Assembly (NCBI RefSeq): GCF_000315625.1
Contig: NW_005434573.1
Location: 62,001-126,000 of the forward strand
DNA: 64,000 nucleotides
Direction of reading: 5' to 3'
Source: Guillardia theta CCMP2712
Taxonomy: Eukaryota > Protista > Cryptophyta
Below the pieces are notes generated by a model. It was not told the origin of the DNA. It was given only the letters and a program-made list of their open reading frames with translations, and ran no database searches. Below are positions 37,861 to 44,682 of the stretch, one piece after another; position 1 is the first letter of the stretch, and each line of letters starts with the position of its first letter. Made by a program: the position numbers and the translations under genes.

Positions 37861-40552
37861 TCACATGCGGAACTCGGCGAGGTTGGCGGTAACGGCCGGA
37901 GAGGAAGACTCCTCCACTGGGAGAGCGACGGCTTCCGAGTCCCCGTCCTGCGAGGAGATGAGATGAGAAGGTCCTTGAAGGGGGAAGGGGAAGAATGAGG
38001 GAAGACGAGGGGGGAGGTGGTGGTGGTTGTGGGAGGAAAGCGGAGGGAGAGAGGGGGTGGTGGTGGTGGTGGTGAAGGAGGAGGAGGAGGAGGAGGAGGA
38101 GAAGCCAGGTTCCCATCAGCCATAGGAAGGAGGGGAAATGGGGGAGGAGGCATGGGGGACTAGAGGAAACTGATGCAAGAAGGAAGAGATGGGGGCAAGC
38201 GGAGGAGAAGGGAAAAACTTGTGGGAGGAAAGCGGAGGAGGGAGAGAGGGGGTGGGGGAGGTTGGTACCTTCCCCTTCCTCTTCGCCGCGATCTTCTTGA
38301 TGTTCATGAGCACTTGCTTGACATCGTCGTCTATCAGTTCCTGTGGAGGCATCAGGGAGATGCTAAGAAGAAAGAGGACGGTCGGAGAAGGGGAGGAAAA
38401 GTTGGGGTGCTCGGGTGTTGGGGGAGAGGATCAAAGCGAAAATCATGAGGAGGAGGTGGTGGTGATGGTGGTAGAGGAGGAGGACAAAGAGGAATAGGGA
38501 GAGGAGGAGGAAGGGAAGGAGCAAGAGCCGGAAGGGGGGAAGGGGAGGGGAAGGAAGGATGGGTCGATTGGAAGGAGCGGGCAGGAGGGGAAGAAACCTC
38601 GTCGTCCATGGATTGCGAGGAGCTTGCACGGATGAAGGGGCCGAACTTGATGCCGCAGAAGAAGAAGGGCATGGAAACGATGGCGAAGAAGAGAAGCTCG
38701 AGCCACTGCAGAGCGTTCAGATGACCTAGGAAGGAGGAGGAGAGGGAGAGAGAGAAAGCGAGCAATGACAGAAAGAAAGGCGGCAGAGGCAAGGACATCG
38801 AGAAATGTAGAGTCATCGCAGAGAGCGAAGGGGAAGGAAGGGGGAGGGAGAAGGGAGGGAGATGCTGGAATGAAACGAGGAGGGAGCAGGAGCACGAGGG
38901 GGAGAGAGGGAAGGGGGAAAGATGGTTTCGAGGAGGAGGGGGATGAATTGGGAATAGGATGAGGATGAGACAAAGGATTAGATAGGGGGATGATGATGAT
39001 GATGATGGAAATGATGATGATGGTGGTGGTGATGTTGAGGAGGAGGAGGAGGAGGAGGAGGAGGAGGAGGAGGAGGAGGAGGAGGAAGGAGCCGCGGTGC
39101 GTCACCTCCATGATCGTCATGACGCTGATGCCCGTAAACATCCCGAGGTTTCCTCCGACTGTTCCCATGAGGGTGGCAAGGCTGATGGACCCCACCTGAG
39201 CTGGGAGATCAGCTGGGAAATCTCAAAGGGTCGCAAGAACCTTCTGCGATGAGACCATGTCGAAGTTGAGGTAGTCGATGTTGATGAGCGAGTAGCTGTC
39301 CTTCACCAACTGCCTTCCAGTCATTCCTCCCGCCTCGTCTCCTATCCTTCTACATGCCCCCCATCCCCTCTCTTACTCTCCCTCTCCCTCTCTCCCTCTC
39401 CCTGTTTGCTCCTCCTCGTCTTCTCGGTGAAGCCTCCGCTTCCCCCAGCCCACCAGTCCGTTTTTTTTGTTTTTTCCCCCAGCCCACCAGTCTGTTTTCT
39501 AGCCTATCACGAGCTCCTTCCCCTCCTCTGCCTGCCTTCCTTCCCGTCGCCACAGTTCTTCCTCCTCGCTCTCTTCTCGCCCCTGCCATCGCTCTCCCTT
39601 CATCCCTTCACCCCCACTTCCTTCCCGTTCTCTCTCTCCCCCTCCTCTCTGTTCGTTTTCACTCACAGCCTGTGCTTGTGTGTCGTTGAAGCAATCGGTC
39701 CCTGCAGGTACTGAATCGCACCTCGGTTTCCACCTGCGAGCAATCAGATCTGCCCTCCAGCTCCAGCTCCAGCTCCAGCTCCAGCTCCAGCTCCAGCTCC
39801 AGCTCCAGCTCCAGCTCCAGCTCATCTACTGCCCACTCTCCCCTCCCTGCTTCTTCACTTCCTGCTCTTACTCCTCCTCCACCACCACCTGCTCTTGCTT
39901 CATCTACTCCTTGACTACTTCCCCTCCGCCTTCGTGCGCCTCACCTTCTAATTTCCGGCGTCACGAGGTAGGACTGCGTCACAACTGCAAGCTCTTGCGC
40001 TGCGATGATCTTAATCGTTCCGACGGACATGTCGGCTGACATCAGAGTCAATCGCTTCCTCCTTCCCTCCCTCCCTCTTGTGGTTCCTTCATCCTCTGCC
40101 TTCCTTCATGCTTCTCGTAAGGAACCTCTTCCTTATCGCCCCTTATCGCCCTCCCCTTTCCCCATCCTGCTCTCCCTTTCCCCCGCCTAGCGCCCCTCCC
40201 CTACTTTCCTTCTCCTCTCCTCCCTCCTCCACTCTTCCGAGCTCTTTCACTCACCAGAGCTCTGCGACACGACCGAGAACTTGTCATACTCGCATCGTTG
40301 AGGGCAGTAGGCGCGCGAGGCGTCAGCACAAACTCCATTGACTCCTCCAGCTTGGCTAGCAGCCGAATGGTGAGAAAAGTTCGATATGGATGAAGTCAGT
40401 CAAAGGATGGGACACTTACCTTGTACTGCAGTCAGAATCGATCTTGCACTCTTTGCCGTAGTTTGCTTCGTTGTCCTTGCCCTGTCAGCAAGAATATGAG
40501 GGGGATCGATCCCATCGACGAGTAGGAGACCAGGACGAGGAGAAGCAGACGA

Positions 40553-40583
<31 letters not shown>

Positions 40584-43500: not shown

Positions 43501-44682
43501 ACGAGTCGGCCAGGAACAGCGAGTCCCTGTCTCCAGAAGTCATGGTGTTGCAAACGATCTCTCACTTTTTCTCACGAGAAATTGATGGCGCTACTACAGA
43601 TAAATGGCAGGACCTGTGGGGAAAAGATAAGAAATCGGGACGATGAGTTCCTCCTTGTGAGCTGATAGGCTTACCAGCGGTAGGTATTCATCGGTGGCCA
43701 ACGATGGATCGTAGAAACCAGAGCAGCCACACCGAATCGGACTCAAGTTGCAGACTGTCATCATTGGCAGGATCTGCAGCGTTGTCAGCCTTGTGCCTCT
43801 TCAAATAGGAAAAGAGAGAATTGGGCATGTGTTCGAACAGCAAAGAACAAAACTGTTGGAACAAGCCACTATCAACACAAAGACGTTCAACAATCTGTAC
43901 ATTGAATCTGCAGGACATGGAGTCTGCAGAGGAAAAAGGCAACTTCACACAAGGAGGAGTTCCTCGCAAATGCGTCTGCATACCCCTTCATGGCTGTCCA
44001 GTCCGAAGGCAGTATCCGATTTGGCTTCGATAAAGAGCATGATCGAGTCGATCACGAAGAAGAACAGAGCATAGAAGCTTGCTGTGAATGCCCCGAACCA
44101 GAACAATCGGCGAATTCTGCATAACATTTTCTCATCGACACATCAAGGCCGCAACGTTAACAAGCTCACATGCCATTGTCCTCGTCAAACACGCGGTTGA
44201 TGCCGTGAGCTGTCGTCACTCCTCCGAAAAAGTTTTCCATCCAGTCCCTGAAAACTAGGATCAAACACACGATCTCAGACTTCACCAATGGCACACCACA
44301 GCGACTGATCGCTTCTCGGCTGTATCGGACCACCCCAGAGGTTCGTACAGAGGTTGATCGACGAGCCACTCTTCTGCGTGTCCCCTCCAGACACGCTCCC
44401 GCCTTTCTCATCCCCTCCCAGTTGGAACAGCTCGCTTAAATCCTTGGACGCATGCGCCCCATTGTCAAGGCTTGCATGGGCATGAGAGCCGTTGCCCGGG
44501 TTGATGGACGACATTCTCTCCAACTTGGACACCCTGTCCACGAGCTCGTCCATGTCTTTCTTCGGAGGCTGATTGCCATCATTTCCGCCTTGTTCCTGAT
44601 CTGATGAGTTGAACAGATTGGGCGGCAGGATGATCCTTGAAAGGCTCCGAGTCCAGTCATGATCCTGGTTCCCTCCAGCCAT
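37861..44682 (-). CDS. DEG/ENaC/ASIC-family (amiloride-sensitive) ion channel subunit, full length, many exons
   Basis: Motifs in order: FFGGVTTAHGINR (HG motif), IIRRLFW + TM1, LPMMTVCNLSPIRC (cf. FPAVTVCN), YGACHTFNP, LSLIEIEPDFLP, GALVHFH...AFSVPPG, YPFTNC...CQLNC, CPQRCEYDKF, LINIDYLNF, TM2 LMGTVGGNLGMFTGISVMTIMEWLE. Last exon DGDSEAVALP...EFRM*, stop at 37861. Confidence 0.9.

Follow-up and report, generated by a model that had tools for sequence, protein, structure and literature searches.

A complete, intron-rich gene for a DEG/ENaC-superfamily subunit in the nuclear genome of the cryptophyte Guillardia theta

Channels of the DEG/ENaC superfamily are usually regarded as an animal invention, the most familiar ones being those of nerves and kidneys in animals. 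ASIC1 has an ectodomain of ∼370 residues with 14 cysteines. FaNaC is an animal neuropeptide receptor, and cryptophytes are not known to have such peptides. Here we describe a gene of DEG/ENaC type in a window (the whole stretch of DNA analysed) of 64,000 nucleotides from the cryptophyte alga Guillardia theta CCMP2712 (assembly GCF_000315625.1, contig NW_005434573.1, positions 62,001 to 126,000 of the forward strand). It occupies the minus strand at 37861–44682, where the locus appears as a long run of short coding pieces with low-complexity DNA between them. We consider it best explained, with a probability of about 85%, as an intact, single-copy nuclear cryptophyte gene, sister to that of Hanusia phi, which encodes a subunit of the DEG/ENaC (ASIC/ENaC/FaNaC) superfamily.

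The preliminary description of this locus had noted that homologues outside animals are sporadic, and the literature agrees: heterokonts (Cafeteria), the filasterean-related Tunicaraptor and dinoflagellates are named, all from sequence only, in two papers (PMC10507113; PMC9822975; Pozdnyakov et al. 2021 as cited there). Whether such protist homologues reflect an ancient origin with many losses or lateral transfer is debated (PMC10507113, PMC9822975). Neither paper mentions cryptophytes, and a literature search on Guillardia, cryptophytes and Naegleria found no publication connecting DEG/ENaC to cryptophytes. The gene described here adds the Cryptophyceae to the non-animal lineages with DEG/ENaC and bears on the question of ancient origin versus transfer. 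It should be noted that the Hanusia and Rhodomonas proteins discussed below are already tagged automatically with PF00858, the Pfam ASC family, in public resources, and can be found there by anyone looking.

The gene model was guided by a transcript-derived protein of Hanusia phi (P0024, UniRef A0A7S0EM62), with every GT/GC-AG junction possible from one exon core to the next listed and given a score. A frame-consistent GT-AG solution exists at 30 of 30 junctions, giving 31 exons joined in one open frame of ∼883 codons, with no frameshift or internal stop in any of them. The frame begins with ATG at 44682–44680 and ends with TGA at 37863–37861, which are exactly the ends that had been claimed for the gene; a second in-frame ATG five codons upstream, at 44697, leaves the start ambiguous by that amount. 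The chosen junction set has 30 GT donors, while the acceptors are CAG in 24 cases, TAG in three and AAG in three. Introns range from 34 to 400 nt, many of them between 45 and 61 nt, and the G+C content of exons (0.54) and introns (0.53) is inside the range of the remaining window. The spliced protein aligns with P0024 end to end (79.2% identity over 849 aligned residues) and is 40–46% identical to the remaining members of the clade.

Membership in the superfamily is supported by profile matches together with the fold of the orthologue. The curated cut-off of the Pfam ASC profile (455 positions long) is 23.6 bits. The exon with the second transmembrane segment (TM2) passes it alone, with 27.8 bits (E = 1.7e–6, profile positions 424–452), and the exon with the first transmembrane segment (TM1) gives a weak match (E = 0.071), yet at the correct profile positions, 20–52. 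The orthologue P0024 scores 102.6 bits (E = 3.5e–29), and full-length relatives reach 94–135 bits, one of them, P0025, covering positions 5–455 in a single stretch. When the TM2 exon was compared with PDB sequences, all 20 matched chains were DEG/ENaC channels (FaNaC, ASIC1, ASIC2, ASIC5, PDPNaC1 and BRTNaC1). A search for look-alikes by language model points to ASC clusters of animals too (0.89), the nearest being from nematodes and arthropods, which we take as a lead only.

From an alignment of 20 sequences, AlphaFold2 gave a model of P0024 with a predicted template modelling score (pTM) of 0.64, in which the ectodomain blocks mostly have a predicted local distance difference test (pLDDT) of 80–94. 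The first 48 Foldseek ranks listed for this model are all ASIC1, ASIC2, ASIC5 or FaNaC chains, with E-values from 8e–18 to 8e–15 and target-normalised TM-scores of 0.53–0.69 among the matches listed. ASIC1 of chicken and human (PDB 6x9h, 9e4d, 2qts) is the best structural match (Z 21–22, 333–399 residues); VIA-align gives Z 22.3 with 333 residues aligned at 3.0 Å, and its longest alignment, 399 residues, pairs model residues 129–781 with ASIC residues 39–465, that is, TM1 through TM2. ENaC (PDB 6bqn, 6wth, 9btg) matches in the fold of the ectodomain with Z ∼19, and FaNaC (PDB 7yvb, 8on7–8ona) over the whole chain with Z ∼18, while structure-based identity to the animal channels in Foldseek and VIA-align is 12–20%. 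The palm, beta-ball, finger, thumb and knuckle of the superfamily are thus all present in the predicted structure of the orthologue, and the earlier claim of a complete DEG/ENaC-type gene holds on profile and fold alike. PAC/TMEM206, a trimeric fold with two transmembrane segments, is distantly similar to the P0024 model; it was rejected as the family of this protein, since it reaches only Z 11–12 with identity of 7–9%, does not match the ASC profile and lacks the motifs.

The window protein has only two hydrophobic segments by hydropathy, residues 159–187 and 787–820, and both termini should lie on the same side of the membrane. The ectodomain between them has ∼600 residues with 32 cysteines and eight N-x-S/T sequons. 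The motifs follow each other in the order of the family: HG in exon 2, TVCN in exon 4, the beta-ball motif in exon 11, the palm pattern G-x-G-N-G in exon 15, H-S...P-G in exon 16, and finally TM2. All motifs listed in the preliminary description were found in order on the minus strand between 37861 and 44682 (exons 2, 3, 4, 11 and 28, plus the 32 ectodomain cysteines). Conserved throughout the clade are HG, TVCN, the beta-ball and palm motifs, a Gly-rich lead-in to TM2, a filter of the form G-[I/M/L/F]-S and, in lower TM2, a pair of acidic residues. Judging by the collinearity of motifs, the extra length relative to ASIC1 seems to lie mainly in three places: a ∼55-residue insert with ten cysteines that separates the beta-ball motif from the palm (exons 12–14), a much enlarged thumb (exons 18–24), and, just ahead of the final palm strand, a small insert with two cysteines (exon 26).

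With ASIC1 the window protein shares the HG, post-TM1, beta-ball and palm motifs, the degenerin Gly, a G-x-S filter and the acidic pair of lower TM2. The two differ in the filter (GAS in ASIC1, GIS here), in the outer pore, where Glu and Asp are replaced by Ser and Thr, and in overall sequence, with identity of only 17–20%. Alignments place this Ser and Thr at the positions of Glu426 and Asp433 of ASIC1a, which mediate its Ca2+ block, and the residue at the degenerin site is Gly in alignments to ASIC2, ASIC5 and FaNaC. His73 and Lys211, the proton-sensing residues of ASIC1a, have no confident alignment to the window protein; for this reason and because of the exchanged outer-pore pair we do not file the protein as an ASIC. 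The GIS triplet and the Thr at the Asp position of ASICs had both been noticed earlier and are seen in our alignments, however the contrast then drawn with GAS and GSS does not make the triplet unique, since FaNaC has the same GIS. The change in selectivity or Ca2+ block that was suggested on their basis is a prediction. The TM2 stretch after the filter is also nearly identical in FaNaC, which is the top PDB match of the TM2 exon. FaNaC nevertheless retains the Asp before the Gly-Gly pair where the window protein has Thr, and the finger region of the window protein, where FaNaC has its peptide-binding pocket, has no detectable sequence similarity to FaNaC, the shared feature being the GIS filter only. 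The ENaC filter is GSS, and the ENaC finger carries protease-cleaved inhibitory tracts, of which none was identified in the window protein. In the window protein a Gly precedes the filter by four residues, which corresponds to the position reported as the amiloride site in ENaC beta and gamma.

Relatives were collected by an exhaustive HMMER search with one cleanly bounded exon (41564–41686) as query. It matched a partial Hanusia phi protein (P0001), a metagenomic homologue of 718 residues (P0005) and several others that are shorter or partial. Word-based searches, first with P0005 and next with a family alignment as seed, gave ∼20 proteins, all with a precomputed PF00858 domain. They include Hanusia phi UniRef A0A7S0EM62 and A0A7S0EKP7 and EukProt/MMETSP proteins of Rhodomonas abbreviata; the rest are MMETSP transcripts and proteins from aquatic metagenomes. 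Hanusia and Rhodomonas both belong to the Cryptophyceae, in different families. With the alga of the window included, the gene occurs in at least three genera of cryptophytes. No animal sequence is among the profile-search matches, and a word search with the TM2-proximal region of P0024 returned P0024 only. Locus scans with the family alignment, which are pattern-based and of low sensitivity, were blank for viral contigs and prokaryotic genomes and gave only three tiny loci in metagenomic collections. A maximum-likelihood tree built from 17 members of the clade joins the window protein to Hanusia (support 100/100) and puts Rhodomonas on a different deep branch.

Within the alga's own 87-Mb genome the family profile gives 14 exon matches, all in this locus and collinear (profile positions rise as coordinates fall), so the gene is single-copy. 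A six-frame PF00858 scan of the assembly likewise finds this locus only, and paralogue searches of the genome with the TM1 and TM2 exons find only the gene itself. The partial Hanusia protein P0001 is informative in another way. It leaves the spliced homologues at exon junctions of the window gene (past residue 199, at 362.7, where 15 residues are inserted, and at 396.7, homology resuming at 434). This EukProt entry is evidently the translation of a partly unspliced transcript, with in-frame intron read-through and several exons missing, and is unsuitable as a reference sequence for the clade. Because it departs exactly at the window's junctions, intron positions are common to the window's alga and Hanusia.

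Several points weigh against the reading of the locus as an intact DEG/ENaC gene. The fold evidence comes from the model of the Hanusia orthologue and not from the window's own product. Taken singly, the ectodomain exons gave no useful Pfam match, being too short and divergent, and exons 16 and 17 and the TM1 exon gave no DEG/ENaC match among PDB sequences; for want of such matches the assignment of the window's ectodomain rests on the orthologue. A six-frame PF00858 scan of a control genome, that of Thermotoga maritima, also produced a match above the cut-off (25-bit), therefore a TM2-only match to ASC is insufficient by itself, and short matches of this kind may be spurious. Two junctions are ambiguous: between exons 8 and 9 the intron has either 49 nt (exon boundary at 43221, the exact Hanusia length) or 37 nt (43233), and between exons 18 and 19 a GT-AG intron of only 34 nt is required, which adds six residues relative to Hanusia. 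In the junction enumeration no canonical alternative of normal size at the latter site retains the conserved residues. Such an unusually short intron could be expected of a decaying or silent relic, all the more so as the gene is known in this alga from genomic DNA alone, its transcript support coming from orthologues in other algae, and its own product is not among the protein-search matches. A pseudogene is nevertheless very unlikely, given 31 exons without internal stop or frameshift, GT-AG ends kept at all 30 introns, and the fact that the transmembrane and motif exons are the ones best conserved relative to Hanusia. Contamination with animal DNA, or acquisition of the gene from an animal only very recently, is less likely still. 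The superfamily is overwhelmingly animal (PMC9822975, PMC10507113), and the nearest language-model clusters are those of nematodes and arthropods. The gene, however, is inside a contig of more than 126 kb in the alga's assembly, and the microsatellite types of its introns (e.g. purine-rich triplets) occur throughout the flanks as well; a CTCCAG hexamer array, for example, is found within the gene at 39755 and a second time beyond it, at 61320. Its orthologues are transcribed in Hanusia and Rhodomonas, with intron positions common to Hanusia, structure-based identity to animal channels is only 12–20%, and the profile search returned no animal sequence. The argument from host-style introns made in the preliminary description is thus strengthened, and we regard contamination, recent animal transfer and pseudogene status as effectively excluded.

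A different objection accepts the fold and denies the channel: the cysteine-rich ectodomain might serve as a surface receptor or adhesion module in a protein that conducts nothing. The ectodomain is indeed ∼250 residues longer than that of ASIC1 and carries extra cysteine-rich inserts, and non-animal members of the superfamily are known by sequence, not by function. Conduction, selectivity, trimer formation, subcellular location and gating of the window protein are, for their part, predictions. The pore-lining parts (HG, the Gly-rich region before TM2, the G-x-S filter and the acidic residues of lower TM2) are nevertheless the best conserved across the clade, which would be unexpected if conduction had been lost, and we consider a non-channel role improbable, if somewhat less so than a pseudogene. 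We therefore retain the reading of the locus as an intact gene for a DEG/ENaC-superfamily subunit.

As a channel, the protein would work as follows. Three subunits would form a cation channel of the plasma membrane, probably Na+-preferring and probably amiloride-sensitive; the acidic pair of lower TM2 presumably contributes to Na+ selectivity, as in ASIC1a. The channel would open when an extracellular stimulus acts on the enlarged ectodomain, candidate stimuli being protons, a small ligand or peptide, or force. Because Ser and Thr replace the acidic residues of ASIC1a Ca2+ block, Ca2+ and Mg2+ are predicted to block the channel little even at the high levels of sea water. One can go further and suppose that the cryptophyte proteins are a non-animal branch of DEG/ENaC that is old and was inherited vertically, in which the enlarged, disulfide-rich ectodomain and the lost Ca2+-block residues are adaptations of a sensory Na+ channel exposed to sea water, and that this channel might trigger the flagellate's fast escape (flagellar reversal, ejectisome discharge). 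We think this extended scenario unlikely. If true, it would put the origin of the superfamily well before animals. Discharge of cnidocytes involves a DEG/ENaC (PMC9822975), and the proposed escape role would echo it.

Several features argue for long residence in cryptophytes: the gene is intact, intron-rich and single-copy, its orthologues are transcribed, and the clade has deep branches within it. The cryptophyte proteins also provide clonable candidates for the first electrophysiology of non-animal DEG/ENaC channels, with natural substitutions at the Ca2+-block positions of ASICs and a filter of FaNaC type.

The exons, all on the minus strand, can be followed from the N-terminus as read against P0024, the family profile and the scored junctions. 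Exon 1 (44297–44682, residues 1–128) encodes the cytosolic N-terminal region and aligns to P0024 residues 2–104. The pre-TM1 region in exon 2 (44170–44247; family profile positions 21–48, E = 4.7e–8) contains the HG motif at 44207–44202, nearly invariant in the clade, and exon 3 (43984–44116) carries the Arg-Arg..Trp pattern and TM1, i.e. hydrophobic residues 159–187, with the ASC match described above. Exon 4 (43675–43773), 84% identical to P0024 175–205, is the first palm strand past TM1, with TVCN at 43758–43747 followed by the first conserved Cys pair, both seen in the clade alignment. The finger region starts with exon 5 (43576–43613), located via P0024 residues 207–221 with canonical junctions, and continues in exon 6 (43494–43526), placed by tblastn to P0024 from residue 222 and bounded by a 51-nt GT-AG intron at junction J6, in exon 7 (43371–43442), with a single frame-consistent 3′ junction (54-nt intron), and in exon 8 (43271–43316), whose frame is set by P0024. 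Exon 9 (43175–43221, or with its 5′ boundary at 43233) encodes a finger helix, and exon 10 (43015–43113; 79% identity to P0024 290–323, family profile positions 213–252) the transition from finger to beta-ball.

The beta-ball motif Y-G-x-C-x-T-F-N is at 42885–42862 in exon 11 (42860–42916), as the clade alignment indicates, and the intron that follows is retained in the Hanusia model P0001. The cysteine-rich insert absent from ASIC1 starts in exon 12 (42769–42813), where donors are of GTACG type, introns have 46 and 53 nt and Cys is conserved in the clade; its middle is exon 13 (42659–42715) and its end, with four Cys, exon 14 (42435–42499), both placed by the P0024 alignment and junction scoring. 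The homologue P0002 has a weak EGF-like match in the exon 14 segment. The palm resumes with exon 15 (42338–42384), which has the G-x-G-N-G strand and 94% identity to P0024 397–412, its P0005 counterpart aligning to the ASIC5 palm, and with exon 16 (41899–42015), whose palm strands show the H-S ... P-G pattern and match family profile positions 326–376 (E = 7.2e–12). One chance-level match each to Aconitase and to a zinc finger among the ectodomain exons was dismissed.

Exon 17 (41564–41686), the HMMER query that matched P0001, P0002, P0005 and others, marks the transition from palm to thumb; it has a conserved Cys and is 88% identical to P0024. The thumb continues with exon 18 (41346–41411), placed by junction scoring and followed by the odd 34-nt intron. 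At 41312–41363 the canonical donor after this exon is seemingly absent in comparison with Hanusia, the next in-frame GT being 18 nt downstream; the donor may have shifted, the intron may be a non-canonical one of 52 nt, or the assembly may be wrong here. Further thumb exons are exon 19 (41225–41311, family profile positions 426–462) and the cysteine-rich exon 20 (41044–41134, positions 459–494, E = 2e–7). The enlarged region comprises exon 21 (40798–40873, 77% identity to P0024 567–592), exon 22 (40705–40747, from the P0024 alignment and junction scoring) and the cysteine-rich exon 23 (40420–40481, 90% identity to P0024 606–626). The thumb ends in exon 24 (40255–40355; family profile positions 548–586, E = 3.6e–8) with a C-P-x-x-C-x-Y pattern, which may be the counterpart of the animal C-x-C..P-C motif.

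Palm and knuckle follow in exon 25 (39945–40035), supported by the P0024 alignment, junctions and family profile, then the knuckle insert with its two Cys in exon 26 (39667–39733, frame set by P0024), and the last palm strand before TM2 in exon 27 (39241–39309), whose counterpart in P0005 aligns with residues 410–468 of ASIC5. Exon 28 (39106–39195), the source of the 27.8-bit ASC match, contains the outer vestibule and TM2, with the Thr at 39162–39160 and the GIS filter at 39132–39124. Lower TM2 and the start of the cytosolic tail are in exon 29 (38598–38705), 73% identical to P0024 763–803 and hydrophobic to about residue 820. Exon 30 (38269–38340) encodes a conserved basic helix of the tail, placed by the P0024 alignment (helix 808–825 in the P0024 model), and exon 31 (37861–37947) the C-terminus, aligned to P0024 and closed by the translated TGA stop. 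The tail helix of exon 30 is amphipathic, conserved and recognisable in P0025 too; that it is a regulatory site for lipid or calmodulin would be pure conjecture.

Some further features of the window deserve mention. The last open reading frame (ORF) of a convergent neighbour, at 37234–37797 on the plus strand, ends 63 bp from the stop of the DEG/ENaC-type gene, and the 3′ untranslated regions of this pair probably overlap or abut. An uninterrupted ORF of 579 codons with a DUF3754 domain (35 bits) lies on the plus strand at 17797–19533. On the minus strand, a 901-codon ORF at 50434–53139 includes a tandem repeat (50651–51810, 2.3 copies of a 498-bp unit at 99% identity) and has a weak, below-cut-off match to a coiled coil of the CENP-F leucine-zipper type. 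Trinucleotide arrays are found at 58842–59130 (CAT, ∼97 copies), 59379–59675 (GGA, ∼100 copies) and 12096–12191 (32 perfect copies of ATG), and the same 22-nt repeat array occurs at 23334–23384 and again, 4.8 kb apart, at 28127–28177.

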